NCBI RefSeq assembly: GCF_001194135.2
Contig: NC_068983.1
Span: 135,335,853-135,393,580 of the forward strand
Reading direction: 5' to 3'
DNA: 57,728 nt
Source of the DNA: Octopus bimaculoides
Taxonomy: Eukaryota
Shown here in pieces: positions 32,388-53,659 of the stretch. Positions within the stretch are counted from its first letter, which is position 1. Each line of letters opens with the position of its first letter. The notes beneath the pieces were generated by a model, which saw only the letters and a list, made by a program, of their open reading frames with translations, made no database searches and was not told the origin of the DNA. The position numbers and the translations under genes were made by a program.

Positions 32388-33413
32388 TCATACTTTTTGA
32401 AGATTTGTATTTTTACTGTCATGTGCAGAAATAAAACTAATGGGATATGGTCCTGAATTTGATGGCTGAGGTAATTCTGTATTTGAAGATATCAAACTGG
32501 AGATCTTTATCACATCAGAATTATCACTGAGACTGTCTTCATTTATATTTCCCGTAGCAGATGTAACTGAAATTAATTGCAGTTCTTTTTGATTATCAGA
32601 ATCTTTATCACAATCTTCTGAATGCTGTGAACAAGTCTCTTCAGATCTACAGGTATCAGATATATTGATGCTATCACTGGAATCAATATTAACAACATTG
32701 TCTTTATTGATATTTCCATGAGTGGTACTGGCAGCAGGTTTTAACCGAACATTATTTTTATAACTGGAAGTATGAATATCCACAGAAAATTCTTCAATAC
32801 TGCTTTGATTGTCTTCATGACTGCAGGGTTCCATTTTTAACTGTAGGGTCTTTGGGTTGATGGCAGGCTCTGTCTCTGGTTCCACTTCAGTCTTGATATC
32901 GACAATCTGGTCTGTAACCATATTTTCTGCAGATCTTACATCAGAACCAGAAGTTGTATTGGATGTAGATGTTGATGCAATGGTAACAGCAGCATCAGCT
33001 TGCATGTTAATATTGTTGTAATTATTTCTAAATAACTTCATTAGCATAGAATTTTGTACCTCGTTAGTGTCTCCTTGTGTTTTAGAAGGAAATAGTCCTG
33101 ACAAAGAACAAGGTTCTGCCAATAAAGGTTCCACCACATCAGATAAAATATCTTTTGTCTTAGCTTTGTTCAATTCCTTACAACAAAGATCTTCAAAATC
33201 TTTCATTTCTAATTTTTCAGCAATAATCTTCAGTTGGATTAGAATTTCTTCATTCAGATCTAAAATACCACTGTACATGTATTCTGCAAATGCTAAAAGT
33301 CCTTCTTTACTGACTGAACTTGGAAAGACCACTTTGGGAAATGAACCTCTTAACGAATGATGGAGAGCTGGCAGCAGTTTTGGACACACAGCTCCTAAAA
33401 CCATTTTATGGAC
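32388..33413 (-). CDS. STPR-BTB copy A exon 4 (BTB core VHKMVLGAVCP...FAEYMYSG...LKIIAEKLEMKDFEDLC plus low-complexity tail)
   Basis: ttttcag|GTC acceptor, phase 0; BTB/POZ consensus (HK.VL.A.S/C, F..YMY.G, A..L.M..L...C); open to TGA at 32388-32390. Confidence 0.88.
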   Translation of the reverse strand, partial: VHKMVLGAVCPKLLPALHHSLRGSFPKVVFPSSVSKEGLLAFAEYMYSGILDLNEEILIQLKIIAEKLEMKDFEDLCCKELNKAKTKDILSDVVEPLLAEPCSLSGLFPSKTQGDTNEVQNSMLMKLFRNNYNNINMQADAAVTIASTSTSNTTSGSDVRSAENMVTDQIVDIKTEVEPETEPAINPKTLQLKMEPCSHEDNQSSIEEFSVDIHTSSYKNNVRLKPAASTTHGNINKDNVVNIDSSDSINISDTCRSEETCSQHSEDCDKDSDNQKELQLISVTSATGNINEDSLSDNSDVIKISSLISSNTELPQPSNSGPYPISFISAHDSKNTNLQKV

Positions 33414-34431
33414 CTGAAAACATATAAAATACATCTGGAATAAATCTAACAAAAATTACAATGATCCTATTTCACCTCACAGTAAAATAAATTTGTAATT
33501 TATACACATTAAATATCCTTTCACCCATTTAATATTTGCAAAGATCATTCAACTGGAGCCTGTTATTGAATTTAGGATAATCACAAAGTTTTACTGACAA
33601 AGTTATCCTAATACATTTCATTGTAGCAATATTGACTAAATTCTGACTGAAAAAAATTTCAGAGTAGCACTGAAGTAGGGTATTGATAGCATTGAAACTG
33701 AAATTAAAAAGACATGACATTTGGAGAAGTATCAGAACGAATTTCTGTCCCTGTGTAAAGATCAATTCAAATAGAGCATGTGTAAAAGTTATGCTGTAAG
33801 GCAGTAAGATACTGACAATGAATGTAGAAGACCCATTGTAGCTGACAAGTAACAAGCTGATTGATATATATTGCTAATTTGTAAAAAATGCTAAATACAT
33901 GAGTTGAGACAGTTACATAGCATCTTAGTTATCGATTGATATATGACAGGAAAGACAACTATACAGGTTTACATATATAATGGCAATAACTGTTGCTTAG
34001 TGAGTAAAAATGTGTAGTAAGTTACTGGTGGAAGGTACATACGAGATAATATTAGGTAGAAGAAATTAGGATGTCGTTGGAAGAAATTACACAGATTCAA
34101 GACAAAAGGAAAAGGCTGTATGAATGAAATCATAGGGGTGAATTATGAACTACATTAAATATTTTAAAGATTGGTAGAATCATTAGTGTCAGATAAAGTT
34201 TTTTGCAGCTTTTAGTTGTAATATTTTATGTTCTGAGTTTAAATCCTGCTAAAGTCATCTTTGCATTTCATCTTCCCAAAATTGATAAAATGAAGTTGCT
34301 GTGCAGAACTGAAGCTGATTTAATTATATCCATTCCACAAAATTTTAGCCTTGTGCATATGTTTGAAATTATTATAATTACTATATTACAACTATAATTA
34401 TAGTTGCATTAAAATTAAATTTATGACATAC

Positions 34432-34609
34432 CAATATATTTGTAGTACCATTACTGATGTATGAGTCACACAAACGTCCTGCTTCCCACATGGAAAATAG
34501 ATTGGACATCACTGCTGTTTGATGATTTGGAACCACTAAAATGCGTTTCTCCTGAACAGGAGGTATAGCTGATTGTGGATGAAGTAAGATTTCACTGGAG
34601 ACAGAATGG
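34432..34609 (-). CDS. STPR-BTB copy A exon 3 (BTB N-terminal part, HQTAVMSNLFSMWEAGRLCDSYI)
   Basis: tttaaag| acceptor (alternative ctccag| at 34594) and TTG|gtatgt donor; 178 nt, phase 2 to 0; the H...L..M....LCD motif is the typical start of a BTB domain; near-identical block at 47484-47646. Not in the ORF track. Confidence 0.85.
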
Positions 34610-35754
34610 CTTTAAATACAAAAACATAAAACACATAACTAGTTAGATAACAGTCAACAGTAACATCAAGTATACCCATTAATAAATTCAAACAATACAA
34701 AGTGTTTGTTAAAGATCTCTGGACATTGCACACAACACCATTTGCTTCTGTTTGCTTGACTGACAAAAAGGTTTCATTCTTACTTCTTGTATGGGTGTTC
34801 AACTATAAGGGCATTCAACTCTAAGAACATTTGTTCCAACCAAATAGTGGGTTGAGGAATAAATTCATGAGCATTTTTCTCAAATTTAAAAATGCACACA
34901 GAAATAAAATTCAATGGCAAAATGTCTTATTTATTTAAAAGAGAATTTTTTGCTCTACAAGATAGTGTACAGTGTACCCCCACTAATTCACGGTTCAGCA
35001 TTTGCAGACCCGGTTATTTGTGGAATCATAAATATCATCTGTGATTTTTTATGGCATTTTTACGTGGCAATATATACTTTTCCACACTTTTTAAGGCTAA
35101 ACTATTAATAATAATATACCGTATTTGTCAGTTTACTGGACGCCCCTTCACAGCAGAAGATCCCTTTGATTTGAATAGCCATGCATCATGTTGCTTGATT
35201 TTTTTTAGATACGAGTACACTGTATCTTGTATCTCTTATTTCTGCTTTCAATCAAAGCTTGCTAATTAGTATAGCAACTATCAGCGCATTTTTTAAAATC
35301 ATCATTACATTTGATCATACACAATATTTATTTCAACAGGATAATTTTTAAGGTCACGAGCTAATATAGCACCATTGAAATTAGGTCACTTACTGGTCCC
35401 TCCCTCCCCTTCTCTCTCACTCACTCACTCTCTCTTATTATTATAGTATAGGTAATACAAACTAAATTTTTCAAAACCATGATTATTTTTAATCTCGACA
35501 TCGCTCAATACATGGTCACAAACAGCGTTTTCTTTACCATATTGTCAGTGGCGATAGAAAATGGTGCCTTTACATCAATATGGAGCAGCAAAACAAATGG
35601 TTCAGCTCTGACAAACAAGTGACTCTACAAGCAAAACAAGACCTTCATCCTTGAAAGACCATGTGGTGTGTATGGTGGGACTGGGAAGGCATAATTCATT
35701 ATGAACTGGTTGAGTGCAATCAAACTTTTAAAGAAGATGATCTAAGATACTCAC

Positions 35755-35980
35755 AACACTGCATTAGTTCTGGTTTTGCATAATTTGGAGTTTGCTTTAT
35801 TAGAAGTGTAGACTGAGATCAATTGGTTCCTCTGTGCTCTGGTTGTTGTTTTGGTTTTCTTTTTCCAATTTGCACCATTTCCAACAGAGACTTTTTGCAA
35901 TTTTCTTGTTTCAACACAACGAAGTTGAGAAGTGGGAATGGAATTAAGTCCTGATTTTTCAACAAGAGCTTGAAACTTTT
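35755..35980 (-). CDS. STPR-BTB copy A exon 2 (linker)
   Basis: ttatttttacag| acceptor and TT|gtgagt donor; 226 nt, phase 1 to 2, matching both neighbours; KFQALVEK...CKTRTNAV; paralogue at 50636-50846. Confidence 0.8.
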
Positions 35981-36879
35981 CTGTAAAAATAAGAATTACT
36001 TTCAAGTAAATTTTTTTCTGGATGGAAACAATTAAAGTGTAATAATTGGAAATATTAAGTCCTATTTTTACAGAATTCATATTTCTTGTTTCAGTGTTAA
36101 TTTTGATTTTAAAACTTCAAAGATATCTAGTTTTTTTTTTAAGTCATCATATCCCTTGTCAAAACGCTATACTATGTTCTCCTTTCCTCTCTTTAAATTC
36201 AATAAATATCAATATTTCAAACTTTGGTTTAATCTTTCAATAATATATCTAAGACATTTTCAAAAGAACAGGCATTAATATTTTGGAAATAGTAGTTATG
36301 AATGTTGCAGAAGAAGAGGTAAGCTCTCGGAGAGCTGGATCCACGAGCTGATATCCTTTATTTACATTAATCTCATTCAGAAAAACATGAGATAACTTCC
36401 ATTTACTCTCTCTTTAAAAAAATCCAATCCCCATGACTGTGAAAATCAATAATTTAGAAATAATGTTTGTAGGTTCTTCATAATTACTTACTGTTTAGGG
36501 ATCAACAACTTTAAAACTCAGAATGCCTTTGCTGTTCAATCACAATCTAATATGCCACTTCCTAATTTCTTGATAAGAAAACCATTAAAATTCCTATTGT
36601 TTAACATTATCACTTCCCCTCTACCACCTTTATTCATCACTCACAATATCCACTCCTACATACCTCTGCTCTCCATCTCTGTGCATCCCTTTCTCATACC
36701 CATTCCACACACTGAACATCATCTCACTATCTCTCATCTGTCTACAGTTTTATTATACTGTTTCTCTTCATCAACCTCTTTTCGTACTGCCATTTATCAC
36801 CTCCTGCTCCCTGACCCACTCCTATTTTCTTCCCCTTCCCCTCCAAACTGATAGTCACCATTGACTACATGTCTACCTA

Positions 36880-37096
36880 TACTCTTTTACTCTTCTACTT
36901 GTTTCAGTCATTTTACTGTGGCCATGCTGGAGCACCACTTTTAGTCAAGCAAATCGACCCCAGGACTTATTCTTTGTAAGCCTAGTACTTATTCTATTGG
37001 TCTCTTTTGCCAAACCGCTAAGTTACAGGGACGTAAACACACCAGCATGAGTTGTCAAGCGATGTTGGGGGGACAAACACAGACACACAAACATAT

Positions 37097-37153
<57 letters not shown>

Positions 37154-37292
37154 TACGACGGGCTTCTTTCAGTTTCCGTCTACCAAATCCACTCACAAGG
37201 CTTTTGGCGGCCCCAGGCTATAGTAGAAGACACTTGCCCAAGGTGCCACGCAGTGGGACTGAACCTGGAACCATGTGATTGGTAAGCAAGCT
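36880..37292 (-). mobile_element. tRNA-derived SINE with internal (CA)/(TA) tract, CORE-like segment
   Basis: gaagacacttgcccaaggtgccacgcagtgggactgaacc; related copies at 12255-12545 (+) and 27310-27450 (-). Confidence 0.7.
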
Positions 37293-39037
37293 GCATTCAA
37301 CTCTGCCCTCATCACTAAACATCTTTCACTCTCCTTTCATACTTTCATGAACTTGACCATCCACCTTTCCTGATCTTCTATCTCTGTTCTCTTTCATTTC
37401 CTCCTTTTATCTTGAGGATATGCCCTGACACAAAATAACCACCATCTTTTCCTCTTTTTCTTGCTGAAGTTGCCATGTATCTCTTCTATAATTTATTAAG
37501 ACACCTGTTCTTGTCTTTCTATCACATTTTAACCTCTCAACACCTTACACCCCCAACTCAGTCAAGAGGATTTGTCTTCCAAGTCATTTAGTGACCTCAC
37601 TAGTGTTGGTACCATGAAAAGCACACTGTACACTTTATAAAGCGGTTGGCATTGAGAAGGGCATCCAGACATAGAAACCATGCCAAAGCAGACATTGGTA
37701 CTCAATAGTCCTCCAACTAGTGAGATTCTGTTAAACCATCCAACCCATGCCAGCACAGAAGACAGACGTTAAATAATGATGCGATGATGCTGATGGAGTT
37801 ATCTCCTGAAACAGTCACGTAATCTGCTTCATTAAAACGTTTTAAAACAGTGATTAATAGGTGTTAAAGTATATATTATTTCTATTTGGAATATATAATT
37901 TCTAGCTATATATTTAATGTCCATAAATAAATCTATAGCTCCTCATACACATAACATCATTTGGCTTAATTTCAATTTAAAGCTAAAATTAGTTTACATT
38001 TTTGTATGTTCTAGAGTTTCATTCTTCGTCTTTGCACACCTTCACACACGTCTTACATATAAATGCATTAAATGATTACAACACTAATGTAATTTTTAAT
38101 TTCTTGTGTTTCGAATAAAACTAATAATAATAAAAACTTAAAAAATAGAGGGTGCGAAAATGACTGATTTCATTCATACACTTTTGATGGAACGTAAGGT
38201 AGTATCAACAAAATTTATGATAACCATATATANNNNNNNNNNNNNNNNNNNNNNNNNNNNNNNNNNNNNNNNNNNNNNNNNNNNNNNNNNNNNNNNNNNN
38301 NNNNNNNNNNNNNNNNNNNNNNNNNNNNATTTCTGGTGTGACAAAAAAATGTTTAACCTACATAAAAAACTCAACATAAATAATCAATGTATGTTGTTAT
38401 TTAGATTTGCATAGTCGCGTCACGGAGCAATACTGAAACTGAAAGTGACTTCATAACTGTTTGACGTGGAAATCAGTAATAAACTCGAAAAGTGCATCGC
38501 TATTCCAAATGTTTACTTTAACATAACAACTTCGAGAATATATTAGAATGCAGTATAAAATTACATGAATTGATTATGAGCCCTTGCTACTTTTACGCGA
38601 CTCCTGCGGAATTTTTAAAACTTTTGCCATGAGGAGTTGATGTTGAGGAAGAAAAAGAAAGGACATCAATACGATTATCCTCTCACACACATCGTGAGAT
38701 GAAACAGAAAATTAAAGAAGTACTCTTCAAAATATCATAGGATATATATATGTGTCCAGCTTATCTAAACCCAAATGTCAAAAATTAATCCTCATTAGAA
38801 CATCAATACTGAGATCTTATAATGATATAAAATCTGTTTTCGTAAAAACAGTAAATGAGATTATGTGACATTGACGCCGTTATCTTGGACGCTAGCCAAA
38901 TGGTTTACAACTTGGACAAGAAGCTGTCACGGAATTGCCGGCATGGTTTGTTTACATTAATAGTGTTAGAATAAAGAAAATTAGATATGCTAGTTATTAT
39001 CACCCTCAAATGAATCAAAAGTTCATAGGACAGATAC

Positions 39038-39533
39038 CAGGATCGTGATGCATCTGCTCCAGGTAATGGCTTTCTTGGTCATCGTAACAGTTGGTCAGGG
39101 CGATCTTAATGCCATTAGCAGTCTGCTTTCGGCCTCGCGCCATTTTAGCCACTTGTGTATTATGACAATTTGGCTCCGAAGTACGCTTGTTCTTTGCATA
39201 TTCGGCGAGTTTCTTAAGTCTTTTCTTTCTTTCCTCAGACGTTTCTCTGGCACGCCTCCTCATTTCGCTCTCAGACAGTTTGCGAAGCCGATTTGCTCTC
39301 TCTTCTGCCGTTTCCTTAGCCCGTCTCTTCCGTGCATTTACGGACAGCCTTTTAAGTCTCTCATTTCTCTGTTCAACTGTTTCACTTCGTCGCCGTTTCC
39401 ATTCATTCAAAGATAATTTCATCAGTCTTTGATCTCTCTCTAAAGGTGTTTCATTAGCTCTTTTGACTCGTTCACGCTGTCGCCTGGCATCTCGTTTTTC
39501 TGCTTCAGTCTTGTATTTTCTCGGCCTTGCCAT
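39038..39533 (-). CDS. STPR-BTB gene copy A, coding exon 1: four 23-aa STPR-type repeats (ETxxxRxxRLxxLSxxxxxRRxx)
   Basis: ATG at 39533; 165 codons +1 nt, then donor G|gtatct. Repeats ETPLERDQRLMKLSLNEWKRRRS / ETVEQRNERLKRLSVNARKRRAK / ETAEERANRLRKLSESEMRRRAR / ETSEERKKRLKKLAEYAKNKRTS are each exactly 23 aa (nt 39177-39452). Paralogous exon at 53191-53659. Confidence 0.85.
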
Positions 39534-40479
39534 TATCTGTAACTTTAATCGGATTTCCTAAGAAACGAAGTGATGCGACTTAGAAGATAATTGATGTAGC
39601 GATATCCGAGGTTAGACAGGTAGTGTATTCTTCGTTAAGCTAAACTAATGCATAATAAATTAACTAAATTATAGCATAAATATATTGATAGTAAAGATGA
39701 AGGGACATCAAAGATAATTAAATAGCACTTTTCTTTTACCCTTTTAAAGGGATTTGTTTTCGGTAGGTTCCGTCAGTTTCCGAGATCCGTGGTTTATGAC
39801 ACGAGGGTAAATATGACACTTAAAGCCATATTCCAAAAGAAGTGAAGTAGAGGGAGGTAATTATCCATTTCTGTTTTAATTTGTGTTACTGATGCGGCGG
39901 ATAATTTTCCCGTAGATAAATAATAATGATAATAAATATACAAGCTGAAGGTTAGTATTCATTTGTTGTTCCGTTCAACCAATTGAAGCACTTGGTTCAT
40001 ACATTGATATCTTTTTCTTTCTCCTTCTATTTTTCTTTGTCTTTCTTTTGTAAAATATATTCCTGTTCATATTTTGAATTTTATGTATGACACCAGTGCA
40101 ATACCAGTAACAATGAATTTGGTAAATTGTTAACATACAATTATAAGGGTTGTCAACTAACTTGAATGAACATGCTGGAAAAAGAAATTGCTGAAACACG
40201 GGAAAATAGTCGTAAATGCTACAAAATTTAGCATAGAATTTAGTCTCAGTTAGGATAGGTGTTGTTTTGCTTTCAGCTGAGTAGGTTTGTATATACCGAA
40301 TTATTGCCAGATTTTTAAACTTTAAAAATAGGTGTTCCATGACGCAAAAACTAATTTGGTACTTGAGTGTTTACAGGTTTTGGTTTGTAAATATAGCGAA
40401 GGCTGTATTTATTTTAGCACATCCCTATAGTGTATTTTATTTACGAGAGATATTTTCCCATCATTTACAAAACTTGGAA

Positions 40480-42680
40480 AAGTTTTGCAGTGCGTCAAGA
40501 CAGACTCTATTAGTTGACATTTCGGTAAATATACAGTTTGAGACCCATTAACGAAAGCCCCCCCCCCCCTCCAAAGCCTACTAGGTGTAAAAAGATGTGT
40601 AGAAAACGAATATGAAAAAAATTGCGCAAACGACGGGTGGGGAGAAGTTTTTAGGAAAATTTCCAAAAGTCCGATTTTTCCTCATAACTTTCAGGAAAAT
40701 GCATATTAGTGAAATTTTATAGAAATACCGTTTAATTGGCACAAGTCCAAATCAAATTACGATTATAAAGAAATTTGTGGGGAAAATGTTTTTCCGAAAG
40801 GGTGGGGAAAGGACTGTTGGAAAGTTCACACGATCCATTNNNNNNNNNNNNNNNNNNNNNNNNNNNNNNNNNNNNNNNNNNNNNNNNNNNNNNNNNNNNN
40901 NNNNNNNNNNNNNNNNNNNNNNNNNNNNNNNNNNNNNNNNNNNNNNNNNNNNNNNNNNNNNNNNNNNNNNNNNNNNNNNNNNNNNNNNNNNNNNNNNNNN
41001 NNNNNNNNNNNNNNNNNNNNNNNNNNNNNNNNNNNNNNNNNNNNNNNNNNNNNNNNNNNNNNNNNNNNNNNNNNNNNNNNNNNNNNNNNNNNNNNNNNNN
41101 NNNNNNNNNNNNNNNNNNNNNNNNNNNNNNNNNNNNNNNNNNNNNNNNNNNNNNNNNNNNNNNNNNNNNNNNNNNNNNNNNNNNNNNNNNNNNNNNNNNN
41201 NNNNNNNNNNNNNNNTTTCATTATAATCGTAATTTGTGCAATTTGAACGGCATTTCTATAAAATTTCATTAATATATACAGGGGTTGGACAAAATAATGG
41301 AAATACCTTAAAATTTCAAACAGATTTATTTTAATATGGAGTAGGACTGCCTTTGGCAGTAATTACAGCTTGAATTCTATGAGGTATGGACTCGTACAAA
41401 GTATGAATTGTTTCCAAAGGAATTTTTGTCCATTCTTCAGCTAAAAGTTTCCAGTTCTTGTAATGATGATCTTGTTTTTCTAAAATGCACCATAAATGTT
41501 CAATAATATTGAAATTTGGGGACTGTGGTGGCCAGATAAGATGTTCAACTTCACTAGAATGGTCCTCATGCCATACAGTTATGCAACCATAAGATGAATT
41601 TAATTAAATAAACTGCTTAAATAGTCTTGACTATTAATTCTGCCACGAAGGGAAGCCATTGGGCCGGCAGATTTCCAAGCTATAGCCTCCCACATCATCA
41701 CAGGTCCTCCTCCATGCTTAACAGTTGGAAGAAGGCAGTCTGGGTCAAATGCTTCTTTTGGCTGTCTCTACACGTATACTCGGCAGGCGGTCGGAAATAA
41801 GGAAAAGGATGACTCGTCCCAAAAAATAACATTCTTCCATTGCTCTTGGGACTAATTCTATAGGTTTTTACTCCACTGTAAACGCTTTGCAACGTTTGTT
41901 TTTGAAAGTAGTGGTTTTCTGATTGCAGCCCTCCTGTGAAATCCGACTTCGTGCAGCTCCTGGCAAACAGTTTTTGTAGAAACTGGGTTCTCGAGGTGGT
42001 CATTAAACTCTGCAGTAATTTTGGGAACTGTACTTTTATGATCCTTTCTAAAAATTTGCATAAGAGTCTGACGGTCCCTATCTGAAAGTCTTTGTTTTCT
42101 TCCTGAGTTTTGTTTCGCCGAGGTTTTCCCCTCTTCCACAAAGGCAGTCATTACTTTCGAAAGTAGATCTTCTTGATACACCAAACATTTTGGCTGTTTT
42201 TCTTATGCTAGCACCTGCCATACGAGCACCAACAATTTGACCTGTTTGAAAGTCCGATAGATCTGTCATTTTAATTACCTTTTTCTGATGATATCTGAAA
42301 AGAAACAGTAATTTTAGCAAAACATATTAAGCAACACTAATAATAAATAAATATAAAAACAAAAATAAACAAGCTTTTGACGGTTTTATAGATATTTCAA
42401 AATTATGATACTAGATGTTTCCATTATTTTGTCCAACCCCTGTATATCCATTTTCCTGAAAGTTATGAGGAGAAAATTGGATCTTGTGAATTTTCCGAAA
42501 GTCCTCTCCCCACTCTATCCGTTCATTTGCGCAAATTTTTTTTCCATATTCATTTTCTATTACACCCAGTAGGCTGGGTTTTTTTTGATTTTTCATTAAC
42601 AGATCTCAAACTGTATATTGACCAATATTTCTAGATGCCTTGTTGAAGCATATCTGTATTTGGTATAACAAAAACAAAAC
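40480..42680. mobile_element. Fold-back/MITE-like element with long inverted arms; right arm split by the Tc1
   Basis: 40480-40775 is the reverse complement of 41216-41276 plus 42445-42680 (e.g. ctcataactttcaggaaaatg / cattttcctgaaagttatgag). Confidence 0.6.
41279..42442 (-). mobile_element. Tc1/mariner transposon, frameshifted
   Basis: TIRs caggggttggacaaaataatggaaa / tttccattattttgtccaacccctg with TA TSDs; transposase pieces MTDLSDFQTGQIVGAR, KPLLSKTNVAKRLQW, WDES, TVKHGGGPVMMW. Confidence 0.92.
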
Positions 42681-43334: not shown

Positions 43335-43620
43335 CATCCTACCCTTGCTGGCAACAAAGAGCCTCTCTCTCAAGGCAGAGTGATGCCTGTGTGCAAACAG
43401 CTATGCTGCATGGCGGTGAAACATGGGCTGTGACAGCTGAGGACAGCGTAGGCTTGAAAGAAACGAAGCCAGTATACTTTGCTGGATGTGCAATGTCGAG
43501 AGAAAAGTTAGGCATCAGATGTGATGTGTAAGAGAGCAAGAGAGATGACTGCGCTGGTATGGTCATGTGATGTGTATGGACGAGGACAGCTGTGTAAAGA
43601 AGTGCTAATCTCTAACTGAT
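43335..43620 (+). mobile_element. RTE LINE reverse transcriptase C-terminal fragment
   Basis: Degenerate ...AMLHGGETWAVTAED...LERNEASILCWMCNV. Confidence 0.65.
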
Positions 43621-44694
43621 ACCAAAGAATGCTGTCATTGATGCTTGATCAGGAAAGACCTGCAACTAAAGAACTATTTTGATAAGTCAATATATGCAAT
43701 TAACATTGAATTGGATAGATATGAAAGCTTTAGTTTCAATCAGATAGATTTGGATATATACAAAATTTATATTTTAAGACAAGAAAGTTATATAGCTTCA
43801 AGTCAGCCTTGATTGAGAAAACATGAGTAAAAACATTCTGGTTTTGACCTTAACACTTTTTTTTCATACATTGTATGTAAGAATACACTGTATCCTTTTT
43901 TACAACAATTTTTGGCTGCTATTTCTAGCAGGTTGAACGACTCTACAGAGGCTCCCTCATTGGTATGGACTAAATTTTATGTAGGGAGGTGAATTTCGAT
44001 TTAACTGCTTTTGGTTTAGGAAGTCTGTTATTGTGAAGTGAAAACAAGACATCCATTCTCAGAGTAATGTGTTATTGAACCAGTTGTCGTTAGCACCACT
44101 GTTCACGGGGTTTAATTGATATTCACTGTGACACCATTTTACAGTTAAACTCATTGAGTGGTGGAAAACAATCAACTGAAGGTAACGAATACTATTTTCC
44201 TCCTTTTTACTTATATACCAGAATTTTCTTGCAATTTTTCAGACATTGTAATGAAATTCTCCAACAAAGTCATAATTAAAAATTTCTTCTAAAAGTTTAT
44301 TAATAAAAATTTAGAATGTTTGTCTTCAAAAAATAACAAATCCATTGACAATTACGCAATAATTATGATTGTTAAAAATCAAATGTCTCTTTGTTACAAC
44401 CCCCCCCCCCACAAAACAAAAAATAACCAGAAAATGTTGCACAAACCAAGTGTATAAAAGAAAATATGTTCTCTCTTGTTTTTTTCTTTAAAAAAATGTG
44501 GTTCAGTAAGGCATAGCAGACATTTTATTTAAGAAGATTATTGATAGTAGAGGCAATGAAGAAGCTCATATGAAAGAGATGATTTGGTAGAAAACTTACT
44601 AGAAAAGAATTTTGGTTTTAAACAATGAAAGGAAACATGAAATTTGTAGTTAAAAAATATTACATGCTGGGAAATTTAATTGAACATCTGCACA

Positions 44695-45738
44695 TTATAC
44701 AGCTGTATAGTCACCGTTATTCACAGAAAATAAACTAATAGGGTATGGTTTAGAATTTGATGTTTGCAGTTGTTTTGTATTTGTAGGCATTGTACTGGAG
44801 GTCTCTACCAAATCAGAATTATTGCTGAGATTGTCTTCATTTATATTGCCTGCCACAGATGTTATTGAAATTAACTGTAGTTCTTTCTGATTATCAGTAT
44901 CTTCATCACAATTTTCTGTATGCTGTGATAAACAAGTCTCTTCAGATTGAGGGGCATCAGATATATTGATGTTATCACTGGAAACCATATTCAGATCATT
45001 TTTATACTGGTTGTCTGAATAAGTAACTGTTAAGTCATTGTCTGTATTGATATTTCCAGAAGTGGCACTGGTAGCAGGTGGTAGATGATGGTTATTATTG
45101 GAACTAGTGTTACCAATATCCATGTATAATTCTTCTTGAAAACTATGTTGGTTTTCATCAGGACTATAAGGTTCTATTTTTAACTGTAGAGAGTTGTGGT
45201 TTGTTGCAGACTCTATCTCTGGTTCTACTTCACTCTGGATGTCAATGATCTGATTTGTAGTCATAATTTCTTCAGACCTTACATTAGATGTACTAGATCC
45301 AGTACTAACAAGAACACCAGGCTGCATGTTATTACTATTGCTGTAATTATTTCTAAACAAGTTAATTAACATAGAATTTTGTATTTTGTTAATGTCTCCC
45401 TGTGTTCTGGAAGGAAATAATCCTGACAAAGAACAAGGTTCTGCCAACAAAGGTTCCACCACAGCTGATAAAATATCTTTTGTCTTAGCTTTGTTCAATT
45501 CATTACAGCAAAGTTGTTCAAAATCTTTCATACTTAATCTTTCACCAATAGTCTTTAGTTGGACTAGAATTTCTTCATTCAGATCTACCACACCATTGTA
45601 CATGTATTCTGCAAATGCTAAAAGTCCCTCTTTACTGACTGAACTTGGAAATGTCACTTTAGGAAATGAACCTTTTGATGAATGATGGAGAATTGGCAGC
45701 AATTTTGGACACACAGCTCCTAAAACCATTTTATGGAC
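44695..45738 (-). CDS. STPR-BTB copy B exon 4 (BTB core plus tail)
   Basis: ttttcag|GTC acceptor; BTB motifs as in copy A; open to TAA at 44695-44697. Confidence 0.88.
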   Translation of the reverse strand, partial: VHKMVLGAVCPKLLPILHHSSKGSFPKVTFPSSVSKEGLLAFAEYMYNGVVDLNEEILVQLKTIGERLSMKDFEQLCCNELNKAKTKDILSAVVEPLLAEPCSLSGLFPSRTQGDINKIQNSMLINLFRNNYSNSNNMQPGVLVSTGSSTSNVRSEEIMTTNQIIDIQSEVEPEIESATNHNSLQLKIEPYSPDENQHSFQEELYMDIGNTSSNNNHHLPPATSATSGNINTDNDLTVTYSDNQYKNDLNMVSSDNINISDAPQSEETCLSQHTENCDEDTDNQKELQLISITSVAGNINEDNLSNNSDLVETSSTMPTNTKQLQTSNSKPYPISLFSVNNGDYTAV

Positions 45739-47483
45739 CTGAAAACATATAAAATACATCTGAAATAAATCTAGCAAAAATTATTGATTCTATTTTTTTC
45801 TCACAGCATAATTAACTTTACTCTATAACTTTGTAGTGTTCACTCACGCAATTTCTTATGACAAAATTATTCTAATACATTGACTAAATTCTGACTACAG
45901 AAAATTTCAGAGAAGCACTGAAGTGGGGCATTGATAGCATTCGATTACTATCGTAAACAGCAGTAGCTTTCTTCAACTGAAGACACCAGTCGTTGATTGG
46001 TTGAAATTACCCAAATATGACAACTTTAACATGAAATAACTTCTAAAATACGAAATTTTGACAAAAACGTTCAGAATAAACCATGTTCTACATGAGAAAT
46101 TCTACCAGTATTCGAAGTTTCAAGCTGTTTAGTTAAAAAAAAATCTGATCGAGATGGAATAGATCCCAATTTTTTTTACAGAAATGATATAACCCCTTCC
46201 TCATCTACAAACAACCTAGACACCAACTACCAAACCTAAATTCTATCAACAGAGATCTCAAAAATGCATCTTCTAGTGGGACCATGTCAAACTTGTTTCT
46301 TAAACAGCAAAAACCTCATTAGAAAACATCAGTGCATCACAATCCACTTGAACAAGAGTAACGCTAAACTAGAGCCCTCACTGTTACCTCATGTTAGGTC
46401 TCTCTATTATTGAAAATTTCTTGGTGAAAGCTAGAGCCACATCTCAAAAACTAGCCTTTCCTTGAAGGTCAGAAAATACTTCATGCCCCATCAATTGCCG
46501 AGCACCATACCCAGTCCTTCAGAACATCCACCCTATCAGCTCCTGTAGGTATTGACTTGCAACATTTTAAGCAGAACCAAATCGTCCAACCCATGCTAGC
46601 ATGGAAAGTGGACGTTAAACGATGATGATGATGATTAGCTAATTAGTCTTAGTGTTCTCACCTCAAGTATCTCTAAAGTAATGCAGACAGCCAATAACAA
46701 TGATACTCTCTAACAACTTGAATCTATCTCTCACTTTGGTGATGAGCAGCATGGCTTCCAGAGCCATTTTTATTGGTAACCTACTCTCTTACATCACTCA
46801 TCAGGGGCTCTTGCTTTAAAGAAGTTTGGTGAAAGCAATGTTGTTATTCTAGACTGGCTCTTCTCTTCAGAGCTAGAAAGTATTTCAGCCTCCAGTAACT
46901 GCTGAAACTGTACAAGATTCAAGTGAGGCTCAAAATGCTGTATTGCTTTCACAAACTAGGAGAGTGCAATTACGCTCACAGGCATCAAAGAGCCACTCAA
47001 CTATTTGCTCCAGCAGTTTGGCCCACATGCATGCTGTCTCCTCTGTCTTTTTTATCACTAATATAATGCCCTTGGTAACTCTGCATTGGCTGGACCCATC
47101 CTTATTCTTGACATCTCAACATCCACACCTTTCTTCCTCACAAAATCAGACCTCTAGAATCTTTAACCCAATCTTTCTTGCAGGTGTTGAACTACAACAG
47201 TTTAAATGGAATGTCAACAAAATCAAGCTCTCTGGTCTTGGAGAGCCCACAAAGGTCATGGTAATAGCTCCTCCCACACTAGAGTTAGATCAAGATAAAC
47301 GAGGCTAAAAAAAATTAGGAAGGCATTCAGAACATTGAAATTCATGGAGGAAAAGAACACAGAACCAAGTTAAATTATACACTAAATATAGGATGTAATT
47401 TAACATATATATAATTTGAATGTATTTAATATTTATTATATTACAATTGTTATAATTACATTAAACTTAATATTATAACATAC

Positions 47484-47646
47484 CATTATAGTTGTAGTAC
47501 CATTACTGATGTACGAGTCACACAAACGCCCTGCTTTCCACATGGAAAATAGATTGGACATCACTGCTGTTTGATGATTTGGAACCACTAAAATGCGTTT
47601 CTCCTGAACAGGAGGTACAACTGATTGTGGATGAAGTAAGATTTCA
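47484..47646 (-). CDS. STPR-BTB copy B exon 3 (BTB N-terminal part)
   Basis: tttttgtatttgaag| acceptor and ATG|gtatgt donor; 163 nt, phase 2 to 0; HQTAVMSNLFSMWKAGRLCDSYISNGTTTIM. Confidence 0.85.
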
Positions 47647-49450
47647 CTTCAAATACAAAAACACATAAAAACAGTTAATAGTAACATCAAATATTTTAGA
47701 ACATGTAAATAAATTCAAACACAGAAACATTATCATCATTCAAAGTCTATGTTCTACAATGGCATTGGTTGGATGGCCTGCAGGATTCAACACATCGAAA
47801 ACTGCATCATGTTCCAATGTCAGCCATGGCAAAGTTTGTATAGCAAGATGCCCTTCCTAACACCAACCATTTTACTGTGTGTACTTGGTGCATTTGTTCA
47901 TGGCATCAGCACTAATGAAGTCACTTGTAAGAGTAGGATCCCTTTCAACTGAGAGGGGCTAGAGTAGAGAGGGAGGTGGCTTTTTGTTGTGGGATGAGGG
48001 GTTAATAAGCGAAATGTTTCCAGGTAGTAAGAATGATAAGTGGTATTAGGGAAAAGCTAATAGAAGATACCTGTTCTGCTAAGAACAGTTCAGTTAAGAG
48101 AGATGATGGTAAGTGGTGGAGATGTCTTAAAGAAGAAATGGTGATAGAGGAGAGACAGTTGGGTATGTTGTGCTTTCAGATATGGGTAGGTCTTTTTGAG
48201 AACCACATATTGCCAGTCATCCCAGTTCTTTGTTATTTTGTCTGTGTGGTTCAAGGTCCTGAGATCAGCCTTTACCACTTCATTCCATGTCTTCTTGGGT
48301 CTCCCTCTTCTGCAAGCTCCATCCACATTCATCATCATCGTTTAACATCCTCCTTCCATGCTGGCTGTCCTCAGCCATATGCATCACATACCAGTACATT
48401 CTTCTTTCTTGCACACACCTGAGTTCTCTAGTTTTTTCTCTCAAACCAATTGTACCTTGTTATTCAGCACATCCAACAGAGCATGCAAGCTTCATTTCTT
48501 TCTAAGTCTTCTAAAGTCCTCTGCATTTTAGGCCCATATCTCACTATGCAGCACCACAGTTCTAATAAAAGCATTATACAATCTATCTTTAGGTCTAAGG
48601 GAAAAGATCTTTGTTACCAGACGTAATAGAAGCTCTCTGAACTTTTCCAACCTTTTCTTACTCTGGCTACTATACTTTTGGTGCAACCACCTCCCTTGCT
48701 AACCACATCCAAAGTAACAAAAGCTATCAACTGTTTCTAGTGACCTCAGGAGGTCTAAAGCCGAGACAAAATTTAGCGCAGACAAGCTAGCTAGTTATGA
48801 GAAATAATTGGCTCAAACAGGGGTTCAGAAAACTGTTGAACGCGACCTTATCTGAAGGTGGAGATTGGTTGGGTTGCACTCTGGCGTGAGATAGAGTAAA
48901 ATACGCCAATACCAACCAATCAAAGTGGTGGACATAAGGGTCCAAAGAAGCGGCCGAAGGCTAGCTGTTATCTGCTATGTTCATGTGTATATAATAGAGA
49001 GAGAGAATAGCTTCGCTACACCTCTATAGATTCACCTATGAGGACTAGATCATCAGCCTATAGATGTATGGGCAGCATGTCTTAAATACTTCCATGACAG
49101 TCTGTAGGACTGAGGACTAAATTTGATAGATACTTACCTTCACATCAGATTCATCACTGAATCCTCACTTTACTTACTAAATCTTTGTACATAACTTGTA
49201 TAGCACCCACAAGTCATTTGCTATACTTCGTTTCTTTGGAGACCATCAAATTACTGAACATGGTACCATGTCAAATGCCTTCACCAAGTCAATGAATGCC
49301 AAGTATAGTGGTTTACTCAAAGCCAAATATTTCTCTTGTAGTTGCCTCACAAGAAAGATTGCATCCATGTTACTTCTTTTGGGCACAAAGCCAAATTGCA
49401 TCTAATGTATATCTCCCCCAATTATGGATCAATTGTGCTATAGCGGAGAC

Positions 49451-50067
49451 GGACTATATGTAATCTGAACCTTTCCCACCTTTATTTATTTTTTTTATTT
49501 TTTTACGGAATCCCACGTTTTAGGCTATGGAGATTCCAGTTCTGAAAAAATTTTTTTCAAAAATCTCAAATTCAAAATTTCGAACCCCCCACTCCCATTT
49601 CCTCATTTCAAAATATTTTCCGGAAATTTTTTTTTTTAGAAATGTGTAAAAAAATACGGAGATTATGATTCTGAAAAAAAATTGTTTGAAAAATTTCAAT
49701 TCCCCACCACCACCAAGCAGGCTATTTACATGTTAGAAATAACAGCCAAATCTCACAANNNNNNNNNNNNNNNNNNNNNNNNNNNNNNNNNNNNNNNNNN
49801 NNNNNNNNNNNNNNNNNNNNNNNNNNNNNNNNNNNNNNNNNNNNNNNNNNNNNNNNNNNNNNNNNNNNNNNNNNNNNNNNNNNNNNNNNNNNNNNNNNNN
49901 NNNNNNNNNNNNNNNNNNNNNNNNNNNNNNNNNNNNNNNNNNNNNNNNNNNNNNNNNNNNNNNNNNNNNNNNNNNNNNNNNNNNNNNNNNNNNNNNNNNN
50001 NNNNNNNNNNNNNNNNNAAAAAAAAAAAAAAAAAGGGGGGGGGAAAGGTTTAGATTACATATAGTCC
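49451..50067. mobile_element. MITE-like element with 27-bp terminal inverted repeats
   Basis: ggactatatgtaatctgaacctttccc / gggaaaggtttagattacatatagtcc; interior partly N. Confidence 0.55.
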
Positions 50068-50635
50068 ATCTGGACCGTTTCATGACCTTCAAAAACTGAT
50101 CCAGTAGTTCGATTCCACTATAGCTGCTTCTCTCTCAGGCATCTCGTTTGCTTTTGCAGCAGTTTACAGTGATACTACTATGCCTATCATGGGGTATGAT
50201 ACCTTCATGTATCTCACTAGATATTTTGAGCATCTCTGCAACTGTCACTGATGGACCCACAGCTTTCACTCTCTTCAAACCTTGCTTCATCTACCATGTC
50301 AACTTGATTTTCTGGTTCCTCTGTATGGTCAGGATGAGATAGTCCCTTCTTTATCCCATATATTCTCCATATTCAACAGCCTCACAATAGCACTTCCATA
50401 CCACTTTCTTGTCCTGCACATCAATGGTGAGCATGCATTCATCATTCTGAATACAGAATGTTTGTTGACAATCTCTAGACAATGCACACAAAACTATTTG
50501 TTTTAGATTGGTTGACTGACGAAAAGTTCCATTCCTACCATTTATTTGGATGCCTTGTTGTAGGAAGGGCATACATCTCTAAGAACATTTGCTCAAATCA
50601 AATAGATAACATATGTTAACAAAATTCTATTTCAC

Positions 50636-50846
50636 CTGTTATTTTTGCATAATTTTGAATTCACTTCATTAGATGTGTTGACTGAGATCAATTGGTTTCT
50701 CTGTGCTCTAGTTGTTGCTTTGGTTTGCTGCTTCAAATTTGCATCATTTTCAACAGTGACTTTTTGTAATTTTCTTGTTTCAACAGAATGTTGAGAAGAC
50801 TGAATGGAATTAAGTTCTGATTTTTCAATGGGAGCTTCAAATTTTC
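50636..50846 (-). CDS. STPR-BTB copy B exon 2 (linker)
   Basis: ttttgacag| acceptor and AG|gtgaaa donor; 211 nt, phase 1 to 2; homologous to 35755-35980. Confidence 0.78.
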
Positions 50847-51673
50847 CTGTCAAAACATCAAAGTTACAAGTTACATCCAAATAAAGATTATTCTGACTGA
50901 AAACAATAAACAAGTATTTTGAAATATTACTCTATTTTCACAAACTTTACATTTCCCATTTTAGTGTAAATTTTGTTTTTAAAGTGTAAAATATTGTATC
51001 TATAAGCTCAAAATTAATATAGCTCATCTTCACTATTTCCCCAAACCATCAACGTTCATTTTATCATTATCAAAATTAAGAATTTATATGTATATTGGTA
51101 TCATAAACCAGTTCAAAGTATTCTACTCGCCGTCTAATCCGTTAATCACGGCTGTTCAACGTTTTTATATTAGGTAAAGGCAGTAGCCATCTATCAACGT
51201 CTTTCGACACTATGCCTCATTTTCGTACTCAATACAAATTAAGATACCTATATTTCAATCTATTATTTACCATTGTAGAAAGGAATTAATGATAGGATAT
51301 TATAATTCATAACAATTGGAAATTTCATTGAATTTTCCAAAGTAAATGAAGCTGTTGCCAATGAATCATAATCCAATGTAGAGTTATTGTTATTTATGCC
51401 CTTTCATCAAAAATGTACACGTTGTGCCACATCCAACATGAGACTATGTGAGAGTCAAGCCTTCATTAGGAGTGGACAGAATGCATACCGAGAATGTTGA
51501 CATACAAATGGCACCAGCTGCGAATCAAAGGTGAAATTACATCAGAACATAATCGCAATATTTATATTAGAATGTAGTATAAATTGAGTAAAGTTTATGA
51601 ACACATTGTTACTTTTACGATTCCTATGGTATTTTGACAACTTTTCATTCAGAGTTGATATATTAATATGATA

Positions 51674-52880
51674 TACACCTCGACTTACGACCGAATTTCG
51701 TTCCGACTGGCAGGTTGTATGTCGGATTAATATTTTTCAGCCCTATTTTCATTCAAACGGGTTATAAAAATATAAAACACAAAAATTTAATCCATAATTA
51801 TTGTTCATAATGTGAAAAATACATAATATGTACTCTATTGTACTATAAACAAAAATTAAAGGGTTTTCCGAATGACAGATAGGCATCGAGGTGAAGTTAC
51901 TTGCTTCTCTGGCGGCTATAATTTGGCGCCACTACAGATAAGAAAAGGCTTCAGCTTAGAACGAGCGGCATTACCACCAAGCAACCAAGTTAACCTATCC
52001 TTAAGAGCTTTGAATTCTGGCATCTTTTTTCCTTCTTGATGTATGTACGTACGTACGAGTAGGCCTTCGTTTCCATAGCAAGTCTGTTTCGTCTACGTTG
52101 AATATATGTTCTGGTAGATAACCTTCAATTAATTCGTCAAAACTATCACCGAATTTCTGGGCTCCTTCTTCATCTGCACTTCCTGCTTCTCCTATAACAC
52201 ATACATTATGTAAAGCAAATCTTTTTTTAAAACGTATAAACCACCCTTTACTAGCCTGAAAATCTTGTGTGTAATCGTCTCCGGAGCGTGATTTTAAAGT
52301 CTGAAACAAACTTTTAGCCTTTGTTTGTACTGTAAGAAGGCTGATGGGTGTTTTTTTCTGTATTAAACCTTTCATCCACATGAATAACAATTTCTCCATT
52401 TCATGGATGGGTCCCTGTCGTTGTTTGGTTAAAATTGTAGACTTCATAGGCACAGAACTTTTCACAGCTTCACGAATTCTTTCTTTGCCCTTAAGTATTG
52501 TTGATACCGTGGAATGCGATAACTTCAAGTCACGTGCTATTGTATTCACTTTCTTTCCGCCTTCATACTGCCGAATAATCTTCATTTTACAGTCTAAATC
52601 AATAGCCTTCCTTGGTTTCTTAGCTGGTGCATCTATAGATGAAAGCATTTTCCTTTTACCAATCATTTTAGAGGTATCTCAGATACAATTGTAACAAATC
52701 CACACACAACGGATGCTTGAAAGCGACTGAGTGAGAGACGGTGACAGGCAGTGGGTGCCTGGGACTGAGGGACGCATGCGTTGCCAGATGCTGCCAGTCA
52801 TCGTACACGCAGCTGCCCAACGTCCGAAAATCGATTTTTAAAATTTATTTATTGTGGTCGTAAGTCGAGAAGGTGTGTGT
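51674..52880 (-). mobile_element. Tigger/pogo DNA transposon, truncated, in intron 1 of copy B
   Basis: ORF 52001-52666 with CENP-B-like HTH, ASKGWFIRFKKR and IFNVDET; inverted ends ctcgacttacgacc (51679-51692) / ggtcgtaagtcgag (52856-52869). Confidence 0.88.
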
Positions 52881-53190
52881 ATGCACACACACACACATAT
52901 ATATATACACCTTCCACACACATTAATGAAACAGAGATGTAAAGAAACGAAATTCATGCTTGAAAAGTTGTCAAAATGGCATGTGATATGTAAAGTTAAA
53001 AACACGTCAGTAGATTATATAAATCCAGCAAAAAGAATACAAACATTGATTTCTTGTTAGAGGAAAAAAAGACAACCACAAAATTTAGACATGGTAGTTA
53101 TTACATTAATGGTGTTAGAGTAAAAGCAAATTAGATACGCTAGTTATTATAATCCTCAAATGAATAAAAAAAAATTCATAGGACAGATAC

Positions 53191-53659
53191 CAGGATCTTG
53201 ATGAATCTGTTCCAGGTAACAGTTTTCGTGTTCATTATAACAGTTGGTCAGAGCGATCTTAAAGCCATTAGCAGTCGGCTTTCGGCCCCGCGGCCTTTTA
53301 GCCACTTGAGTATTATGGCAATTTGGTTTTGAAGTACACTTGTTTGTATTTTTGTTTCTTTTCTGACTCGATTCTCTGGCACGTCTTTTCATTTCGTTCT
53401 CAGATAGTTTTCGAAGCCGATTTGCTTTCTCTGCCGTTTCCTTAGCCCGTCTCTTTCGTGCATTTAAAGACAACCTTTTAAGTCTCTCCTTTCGCTCTTC
53501 AATTGTCTCATTTCTTCGCCGATTCCATTCATTCAAAGATAAATTCATCAATCTTCGATCTCTCTCTAAAGGTGTTTCATTAGCTCTTTTGATTCTTGCA
53601 CGCTGTCGTGAGACCGCTCGTCGCTCTGCTTCAGTCTTGTATTTTTTTGGCCTAGGCAT
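53191..53659 (-). CDS. STPR-BTB gene copy B, coding exon 1 (STPR repeats; 3rd and 4th shortened)
   Basis: ATG at 53659 (MPRPKKY); 156 codons +1 nt; the same G|gtatct donor as copy A. Confidence 0.82.

Follow-up and report, generated by a model that had tools for sequence, protein, structure and literature searches.

A tandem array of STPR-BTB genes in Octopus bimaculoides, with candidate transposase-derived first exons in one copy

Two STPR-BTB genes and their DNA-binding repeats

The stretch of DNA analysed here, hereafter the window, comprises 57,728 nucleotides (nt) from Octopus bimaculoides (NCBI RefSeq assembly GCF_001194135.2, contig NC_068983.1); the locus is located on chromosome CM046603.1 at ~135.37-135.41 Mb, of which the window is the reverse complement. 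It carries two genes, referred to as copies A and B, whose products join STPR repeats to a BTB domain and a long acidic tail. Gene models were assembled from the splice sites visible in the sequence. Both genes are on the minus strand and consist of four coding exons separated by GT-AG introns in phases 1, 2 and 0: copy A (496, 226, 178 and 1026 nt) has an intact open reading frame (ORF) of 641 amino acids (aa), and copy B (469, 211, 163 and 1044 nt) an intact ORF of 628 aa. The layout, phases, lengths and intact frames reproduce those proposed in an earlier sequence-only reading of the window. That reading had taken A and B for a simple tandem pair; instead, they form the end of a C-B-A array within a larger cluster of BTB genes, described below. 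In RefSeq, the copy B model is identical to isoform X3 of LOC106872008 and copy A is annotated as a 641-aa product, the O. sinensis orthologue of which is LOC115209550 (94% identity); A, B and the O. sinensis A orthologue are all labelled 'uncharacterized'.

Exon 1 of A (39038..39533, minus strand, ending in phase 1) codes for a basic N-terminal helix of 27 aa, four STPR repeats and an AT-hook-like linker. It is followed by exon 2 (35755..35980, phase 1 to 2), which encodes a basic low-complexity linker and also measures 226 nt in the O. sinensis orthologue, by exon 3 (34432..34609, phase 2 to 0), which encodes the N-terminal part of the BTB domain (beta1/alpha1; Pfam BTB match from ~34491), and by exon 4 (32388..33413, stop codon included), which encodes the remaining BTB to ~33165 and, beyond it, a conserved motif followed by an acidic tail rich in Ser and Asn. 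In B, also on the minus strand, the STPR module is encoded by the first exon, called exon 1b (53191..53659, ending in phase 1). Exon 2 (50636..50846) separates it from exon 3 (47484..47646), which holds the N-terminal part of the BTB, and exon 4 (44695..45738, stop codon included) supplies the remaining BTB to ~45490 and the tail. Because exon 3 measures 178 nt in A, in C and in the single homologue of Argonauta, the 163 nt of B exon 3 represent a derived 15-nt deletion. At exon 3 of A, two in-frame acceptor AGs lie 15 nt apart (tttaaag/CC and ctccag/TG; 34594-34609, minus strand), and in O. bimaculoides as well as O. sinensis RefSeq uses the upstream acceptor. These acceptors make a 5-aa alternative isoform of A possible, while B is devoid of the 15 nt.

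The introns of A and B are largely unalignable and contain different multi-copy blocks. The sequence-only reading had likewise seen different insertions in the introns of each copy, but the Tigger ORF that it counted among those of B intron 1 is annotated as an alternative coding exon and conserved. Intron 2 of A measures 4.9 kb in O. sinensis and 1.1 kb in O. bimaculoides (34610-35754), a difference of 3.9 kb by insertion or deletion, and large indels lead to a fast turnover of intron sequence in these genes. Three assembly gaps are found within A intron 1 (38233..38328), B intron 2 (49759..50017) and the B-A intergenic region (40840..41215), none of which touches an exon. An exon hidden in a gap was considered and ruled out, since the orthologous loci, which are gap-free in O. 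sinensis, O. vulgaris and Argonauta, contain these four coding exons and nothing extra. At the edge of another gap, one of 1297 N in the chromosome record, the last 441 bases of the window (57288-57728) recur on the far side at 99.8% identity, which is probably an assembly duplication.

Proteins of the STPR family contain strict 23-residue tandem repeats with conserved Glu1, Thr/Ser2 and Arg9, and in FMBP-1 each STPR helix tracks 4 bp of the AT-rich major groove, DNA being contacted by repeat positions 6, 9, 10, 13, 14, 16, 17, 20 and 21 (PMC4856987). The exon 1 products of both copies score above the curated cutoff of 27 bits for the Pfam family STPRs (PF21107), with 64.9 bits for A and 33.2 bits for B. 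A 27-aa N-terminal segment followed by 4 x 23 aa is found in A of both species and in Argonauta; in O. bimaculoides, the repeats of A extend over 39452-39384 (R1), 39383-39315 (R2), 39314-39246 (R3) and 39245-39177 (R4) on the minus strand, and all four of them have E1, T2 and R9. Against the FMBP-1 crystal structure 5d23, the STPR of A aligns gaplessly over the full set of four repeats (E=7.5e-11). For the O. sinensis A orthologue, AlphaFold predicts a short N-terminal helix and four helices of 21-23 residues (H30-50, H53-73, H76-96 and H99-121) joined by 2-residue linkers, with a predicted local distance difference test (pLDDT) score of ~90. By analogy with FMBP-1, the STPR of A should read the AT-rich major groove by shape, at 4 bp per repeat.

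Copy B departs from this design. Its R1 (53578-53510, minus strand) and R2 (53509-53441) keep the 23 aa and the three conserved residues in both species, as does R3 in O. sinensis. In O. bimaculoides, R3 (53440-53375) has 22 aa, and R4 (53374-53330) is a 15-aa stump with neither Arg9 nor Leu10. The sequence-only reading had reported a loss of 1 aa in repeat 3 and of about 8 aa in repeat 4, which correspond to clean deletions of 3 nt and 24 nt. The larger one, which takes out R4 positions 9-16 (including Arg9, Leu10, Met13, Ser14 and Tyr16), is common to O. bimaculoides, O. sinensis and O. vulgaris, the last two having 3 x 23 aa plus the stump; the smaller one, which removed a residue between Glu1 and Arg9, occurs only in O. 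bimaculoides (23 + 23 + 22 aa plus the stump) among the species compared. Since Argonauta and A keep four full repeats, the repeat-4 loss is derived, and B had been correctly designated as the eroded copy. C, for its part, has 3 x 23 aa, one repeat being exactly absent. The AlphaFold model of B fuses R2 and R3 into one unbroken helix of 53 residues (H53-105) and drops in confidence at R4, which is suggestive only of a loss in B of the zig-zag, separate-helix geometry predicted for A. In FMBP-1, three repeats are enough for binding, with a dissociation constant ~4.6-fold weaker (PMC4856987).

Beyond the repeats, an AT-hook-like motif is present at ~39150-39110 in A and ~53320-53285 in B (minus strand). 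It reads KRPRGRPPKK in Argonauta, KRPRGRKP in B and, in degenerate form, KMARGRKQ in A, and it is lost in C; by comparison with the AT-hook consensus, the Argonauta motif can be regarded as canonical and that of B as close. If functional, such a motif would let the protein touch the minor groove of AT-rich DNA as well, next to the major groove read by the STPR.

The BTB domains match PF00651 with 32.2 bits (A) and 34.0 bits (B), above the cutoff of 20.5, over profile positions 4-108 of 110. In both copies, the alignment with the dimeric BTBs of Miz-1, BCL6, PLZF, ZBTB9 and gigaxonin spans the whole domain, beta1/alpha1 included, and the AlphaFold models of the two BTBs are of low confidence (pLDDT 35-69). 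The last ~220 residues form an acidic tail with much Ser and Asn, which AlphaFold predicts to be disordered. Within the tails (A 32388-33100, B 44695-45420, minus strand), short motifs are kept across all paralogues, namely DIKTE, LKMEP or LKIEP, LQLISVTS, SDLVEISS and a C-terminal PYP(I/V)S. We take DIKTE and LKMEP/LKIEP to fit the SUMOylation consensus psi-K-x-E, while the hydrophobic-acidic LQLISVTS and SDLVEISS presumably resemble SUMO-interaction motifs.

An exhaustive HMMER search with the STPR exon of A against 1.84 billion protein cluster representatives returned 102 matches, and a BTB was found in only two cephalopod clusters. The other 100 matches were mostly STPR-only proteins, one having C2H2 fingers and none a BTB; a word-based search with the STPR exon alone gave 1 match. 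The octopus proteins share with the FMBP-1/STPR family, to which human ZNF821 belongs, the tandem 23-aa repeats with Glu1, Thr/Ser2 and Arg9. Unlike that family, they combine the STPR with a BTB and a long acidic tail, their paralogues vary in repeats (4; 3 plus a stump; 3), and their DNA binding is predicted by analogy. One of the matches was a complete Helitron Rep/Hel protein with an N-terminal STPR, followed in this order by DUF6570, OTU, Helitron_like_N and PIF1. The clusters of the nearest STPR relatives are named 'hypothetical' or 'STPR domain-containing' in insects, or are unnamed contigs, and give no pointer to a host-gene or Helitron source. The STPR may itself be a transposon-borne head, and the octopus exon may have come from either a host gene or a Helitron; a literature search found no paper linking STPR with Helitron.

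Just upstream of B, a Helitron-like fragment was detected at 56813-57631 (minus strand). One of its ORFs (57631-57197) shows an STPR-like 23-aa periodicity; by BLASTP it matches many STPR regions (best E=1.7e-7), and it is 37% identical to A exon 1 without gaps. The other (57166-56813) is rich in Cys, with matches to proteins in which STPR occurs together with the same module (E=5.6e-17). Besides these BLASTP matches, a likeness to the N-terminal Cys motif of Helitrons points to its Helitron-like identity. Neither ORF had a Pfam match, and the fragment is absent from the O. sinensis interval between the first two alternative first exons of B, 1a and 1b.

Annotated alternative first exons of copy B

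According to the RefSeq models of O. bimaculoides and O. sinensis, B possesses three alternative first coding exons, 1a, 1b and 1c, all of which end in phase 1 and are joined to the same exon 2, their common acceptor. Exon 1c (52057..52666, minus strand, 610 nt) corresponds to the Tigger ORF of B intron 1 and forms the start of RefSeq isoform X1 (99% match to the isoform N-terminus). It derives from a Tigger/pogo transposase and encodes CENP-B_N and HTH_Tnp_Tc5 (Pfam) followed by the first residues of the DDE core, up to the donor ACTC/gtacgt. Directly after this donor, the DDE core slips out of frame (51900..52056, minus strand, containing KDRLTWLLGGNAA) and runs for ~50 codons to a stop, the rest of the transposase being missing. 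Because the frame of the DDE core is lost after the donor, the element is a dead Tigger, the DNA-binding part of which is spliced to the BTB in the gene models. At the position of exon 1c, B intron 1 carries ~1.1 kb extra relative to A intron 1, a difference that would be consistent with a Tigger insertion after the A/B duplication.

Exon 1a (472 nt) encodes a pogo-like helix-turn-helix (HTH) and forms the start of RefSeq isoform X2; it is located 7.7 kb upstream of the STPR exon, outside the window, and a database look-up found no entry for X2 as a gene product. In O. sinensis, the exons follow each other in the order 1a, 1b (STPR) and 1c within 3.8 kb. O. bimaculoides and O. sinensis share the phase-1 GT donors of all three, O. 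vulgaris likewise has the three exons, and the ORFs of 1a and 1c are open at orthologous positions in the three species. B is consequently more aptly seen as a gene offering three DNA-binding modules than as a degraded A.

A further transposon-derived HTH lies between B and A on the gene strand, in a frameshifted Tc1/mariner fragment (HTH_Tnp_Tc3_2; 41698-42184, minus strand). The possibility that this ORF, which lies upstream of A, is a fourth captured head was ruled out, no protein-level conservation being found at the orthologous site of O. sinensis. The fragment is a lineage-specific, ordinary transposable element (TE) relic and serves as a negative control for the conservation of exons 1a and 1c. 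Outside the locus, a 3.5-kb Logan contig from SRR8281692 contains an uninterrupted THAP+BTB ORF of 901 aa, 38% identical to A, between flanks resembling untranslated regions; it looks like the spliced mRNA of a family member.

Host-transposase fusions have been described to arise when a transposon inserts into an intron and is captured through alternative splicing, while the parental transcript persists alongside (bioRxiv 10.1101/2020.05.07.082677). Copy B resembles the fusions described there, such as KRABINER and SETMAR, in that a DNA transposon lies within an intron of a regulatory host gene and has its DNA-binding domain spliced in frame, the catalytic core is lost (shown for exon 1c), the parental isoform coexists and the captured part bears signs of purifying selection. 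It differs from them in several respects: the host domain is a BTB rather than a KRAB or SCAN, the lineage is a mollusc, the captured part is an alternative first exon rather than a downstream one, and one gene has two independent pogo/Tigger captures besides its parental STPR head, the fusion being known here from gene models.

The C-B-A array, mosaic similarity and selection

A third STPR-BTB gene, C (LOC115209332), is found upstream of B on the same strand, and the order C-B-A is common to O. bimaculoides, O. sinensis and O. vulgaris. Its exons of 430, 223, 178 and 1011 nt have the same layout and phases as those of A and B. A protein search in O. sinensis revealed two more BTB paralogues, LOC115209549 and LOC115209547, the isoforms of which have THAP, CG-1-like, pogo HTH or Tc1/mariner HTH+DDE_3 modules before the same kind of BTB and tail. 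LOC115209547 shares the chromosome and strand of C and lies ~70-110 kb upstream of it, and adjacent locus numbering suggests that LOC115209549 is located between the two, which would make a five-gene same-strand BTB cluster. Argonauta has one STPR-BTB gene (exons of 460, 214, 178 and 840 nt, same phases, four full repeats), with no second STPR-BTB copy within 10 kb on either side. Since this single gene has the same phases and repeats, the gene structure is old and the triplication apparently took place in the Octopus lineage. In O. vulgaris (OX597816.1), a gene model that spans 24 kb to link exons 1-3 of B with exon 4 of A was examined as a real hybrid gene and ruled out, both parents being complete there; the model is either an annotation chimera or a hint of read-through transcription from B to A.

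Similarity among the paralogues is mosaic. Nucleotide divergence between A and B amounts to 14.9% in exon 1, 16.6% in exon 2, 4.3% in exon 3, 10% in the BTB part of exon 4 and 21.8% in the remainder of exon 4. The value for exon 3 (7/163 sites; dS 0.06-0.09, about the orthologue level) contrasts with the 15-17% of exons 1 and 2 (P=1e-4) and with the 23% that separates A from C in the same exon, and A and B compared across species in exon 3 differ at 4-7 of 163 sites, which does not exceed the distances between orthologues. For the second half of the BTB, A and C are the close pair (4.4% in O. bimaculoides and 0.7% in O. sinensis, versus 11-13% between A and B), whereas in the distal tail B is closer to C (13%) than to A (23%). 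Because the A-C divergence of 0.7% in O. sinensis is below the 3.7% that separates the A orthologues, a conversion event after the species split is indicated. The array would thus in part exchange short tracts by gene conversion among A, B and C, as suggested by these sequence comparisons. The contrast between a conserved BTB and a diverged tail, which the sequence-only reading had pointed out, is borne out by measurement, but it is partly the product of this mosaic among the three genes. Since mosaic segments mix coalescence times, the per-domain ratios of nonsynonymous to synonymous rates (dN/dS) between A and B are not a simple measure of constraint.

Selection was therefore assessed between orthologues, with the method of Nei and Gojobori applied to O. 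bimaculoides and O. sinensis, the split of which is shallow (dS ~0.05-0.1). Over the whole gene, A shows 25 synonymous and 35 nonsynonymous changes (dN/dS 0.37, P=0.0004) and B 20 and 60 (dN/dS 0.80, P=0.24 for purifying selection), counts that differ between the two copies (Fisher P=0.045). The BTB region yields a dN/dS of 0.16-0.18, that of B being 0.16 with 5 synonymous and 3 nonsynonymous changes. Indels are more telling about the reading frames. Orthologous introns accumulate 7.9 small indels per kb, 75% of which are not multiples of 3, so that ~11 frameshifting indels would be expected per 1.9-kb coding sequence under neutrality. In contrast, all 10 coding indels between the species in A, B (exon 1c included) and C are multiples of 3 (P ~1e-6), compared with 25% in introns; A accounts for 2 of them and B for 3, all in frame. 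This excess indicates that all the reading frames are actively maintained and, together with the BTB ratios, upholds the earlier proposal that both copies are under selection.

The asymmetry that had been noticed between the two copies was likewise recovered. When Argonauta is used as the outgroup, 49 amino-acid changes are specific to the B lineage and 28 to that of A in O. bimaculoides (P=0.02), versus 43 and 26 in O. sinensis (P=0.05), and the STPR exon of B diverges twice as fast between species as that of A (6.0% for exon 1b versus 3.0% for A exon 1, P=0.03). The A/B rate asymmetry is real but modest. Among the three heads of B, exon 1a is the most constrained, with a divergence of 3.0%, no indel in 472 nt and a dN/dS of 0.18 (8 synonymous and 6 nonsynonymous changes, P=0.003). 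Exon 1c has a dN/dS of 0.43 (11 and 19 changes, P=0.03), the power of this test being limited by a dS of only ~0.09, and its three indels (9, 3 and 9 nt) are all in frame (P=0.016). Constraint on exons 1b and 1c is weak and relaxed.

Readings of copy B and their bearing on octopus regulators

The account that we favour, with a probability of roughly 0.6, is that of a gene-converting array in which A is ancestral and B is a faster-evolving copy that acquired two pogo/Tigger first exons while its STPR head was losing repeats. The locus would then be the distal end of a same-strand C-B-A array of STPR-BTB transcription factors proper to the Octopus lineage, set in a larger cluster of cephalopod-specific BTB genes with interchangeable N-terminal DNA-binding modules. 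A would keep the ancestral design, with its basic helix, four STPR helices (spanning ~16 bp by analogy with FMBP-1), a long-form dimerising BTB and a disordered acidic tail. In B, mutually exclusive use of exons 1a (pogo-like HTH), 1b (reduced STPR) and 1c (Tigger DNA-binding domain) would produce BTB proteins with three different heads, which would mean that alternative splicing has captured transposase domains while the parental STPR transcript persists. Such redundancy may have relaxed the constraint on the STPR exon: B would be left with three usable repeats, covering ~12 bp and probably of reduced affinity, and in O. bimaculoides with even fewer. The exchange of short tracts between the three genes by gene conversion would keep the BTB parts near-identical, especially the interface elements encoded by exon 3 of A and B, and such interfaces would allow homo- and heterodimers that pair different DNA-binding heads. 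The gene structures, domains and synteny, the maintained frames, the unequal rates, the mosaic similarity and the conservation of the alternative exons with their donors are what the comparisons demonstrate; the DNA footprints, dimerisation, isoform usage and regulatory output in this scheme are only what we infer.

Several observations weigh against it. The low divergence of exon 3 could reflect silent-site constraint rather than gene conversion, since the intron flanks are more diverged than the exon, and the proposed dimers are predicted from sequence likeness to dimeric BTBs, the AlphaFold BTB models being of low pLDDT. Over this short split, the whole-gene dN/dS of B is indistinguishable from neutral, and its tail, with 5 synonymous and 30 nonsynonymous changes, reaches a non-significant 1.55. 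The per-exon tests are based on 10-30 substitutions each, and exons 1b (6.0%) and 1c (5.1%) diverge at about the intronic rate (5-8%). Lastly, isoforms X1-X3 are computational RefSeq models rather than transcript-derived ones, and the protein search found no Logan-derived proteins clustered with A or B.

Among the alternatives, the one that survives best was put forward by the sequence-only reading and sees in A and B a simple subfunctionalised pair, the short STPR of B conferring an altered specificity or making B a DNA-binding-impaired heterodimer partner that modulates A through the BTB. The missing core contact positions 9-16 of R4, the 22-aa R3 of O. bimaculoides, the lost zig-zag geometry of the AlphaFold model, the near-identical exon 3 interface and the resemblance of the BTB to those of dimeric ZBTB and KLHL proteins would all suit a modulator. 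Yet this view overlooks exons 1a and 1c, which are complete alternative DNA-binding domains, as well as copy C and the wider cluster. Moreover, three STPR repeats suffice in FMBP-1, and by that analogy B has probably kept its DNA binding, in O. sinensis at any rate, rather than being a pure dominant-negative. We consider it an unlikely explanation.

Slightly less likely still, exon 1b may be decaying and open only by chance, B working mainly through exon 1a and perhaps 1c. Its divergence at the intronic rate, twice that of A exon 1 and of exon 1a, would be expected of a decaying exon, as would its successive deletions, the 24-nt one shared between species and then the 3-nt one in O. bimaculoides only, and the low dN/dS of exon 1a as the most constrained head. 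However, the ATG, frame and donor of exon 1b are kept in three species, and its sole interspecies indel is in frame. Its repeats show a dN/dS of 0.35 between species (7 synonymous and 9 nonsynonymous changes, P=0.045) and of 0.42 between A and B (P=0.009), and its Pfam score is still above the curated cutoff.

It is rather improbable that the HTH isoforms are annotation artefacts, in which the Tigger and pogo-like ORFs would be inert transposon relics joined to exon 2 by gene predictors. The computational nature of X1 and X2 would fit such an origin, as would the nucleotide divergence of exon 1c, which equals that of the flanking intron, and the faulty annotation elsewhere at the locus, exemplified by the chimeric model of O. 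vulgaris. Against it stand the conservation of both ORFs and of their phase-1 donors at orthologous positions, the indel and dN/dS patterns of exons 1a and 1c, and the Tc1 fragment nearby, a true TE relic that is not conserved. Head-swapping also recurs in neighbouring BTB genes, and a THAP+BTB fusion is found on the mRNA-like contig. Finally, the idea that A and B are divergent haplotypes, or a duplicated assembly artefact put in tandem, can practically be discarded: notwithstanding the many assembly gaps and at least one duplicated gap flank nearby, most exons are 15-22% divergent and the introns unalignable, the order C-B-A with orthologue-specific features recurs in the independent, gap-free assemblies of O. 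sinensis and O. vulgaris, and at the protein level orthologues are 94-97% identical versus ~72% for paralogues. The mis-assembly that the sequence-only reading had named as a way in which it could be wrong is thereby excluded.

Returning to the favoured account of a gene-converting array with captured heads, its parts have precedents. According to a 2023 survey, most Octopus CENPB-type and THAP-type factors carry a BTB (PMC10027918). The combination of a BTB with a pogo-derived HTH or THAP and the lineage-specific expansions are shared by these octopus factors, by the genes studied here and by arthropod BTB + HTH_psq proteins. That survey very likely counted B isoforms X1 and X2 as well as the products of the neighbouring genes in the cluster; it mentions STPR 0 times and likewise leaves undescribed the tandem array, the alternative first exons and the gene conversion (PMC10027918). 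What is new is the STPR+BTB architecture and a side-by-side 'before and after' of head replacement; the genes were already annotated, and each mechanism is familiar singly.

Another parallel is offered by insects. The Drosophila genes lola and mod(mdg4) encode an N-terminal BTB and have 20-30 variable DNA-binding exons at their 3' end, with trans-splicing in mod(mdg4). As in B, constant BTB exons are combined with alternative exons for different DNA-binding modules, and BTB oligomerisation can mix isoforms. Unlike in these genes, the variable exons of B are at the 5' end, the BTB is central, the variants number three and the origin is independent. Tentatively, and with more doubt than belief, we envisage a lineage-specific family of octopod regulators built on a BTB-plus-tail chassis, which would have received its heads from mobile elements (pogo/Tigger HTH, THAP, Tc1/mariner and possibly a Helitron STPR) and would pair them combinatorially in heterodimers. 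Alternative first exons would equip a single gene with several heads, and the BTB interfaces would stay compatible through gene conversion. If true, such a family would be an N-terminal mirror image of lola and mod(mdg4), and its proteins might target cognate transposon sequences across the repeat-rich octopus genome.

Cephalopod genomes are marked by lineage-specific expansions of regulatory genes and by heavy transposon loads, and few cases join both mechanistically. The locus appears to show transposase capture in progress, with the parental type in A and Argonauta, a copy with acquired heads in B and another repeat number in C. The STPR+BTB genes also extend a little-studied DNA-binding fold by a new architecture and provide natural variants with 4, 3 and 2.x repeats for the rule of '4 bp per repeat'. 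If the isoforms are real, these genes would constitute a compact system for the origin of transcription factors and for dimerisation interfaces kept by gene conversion.

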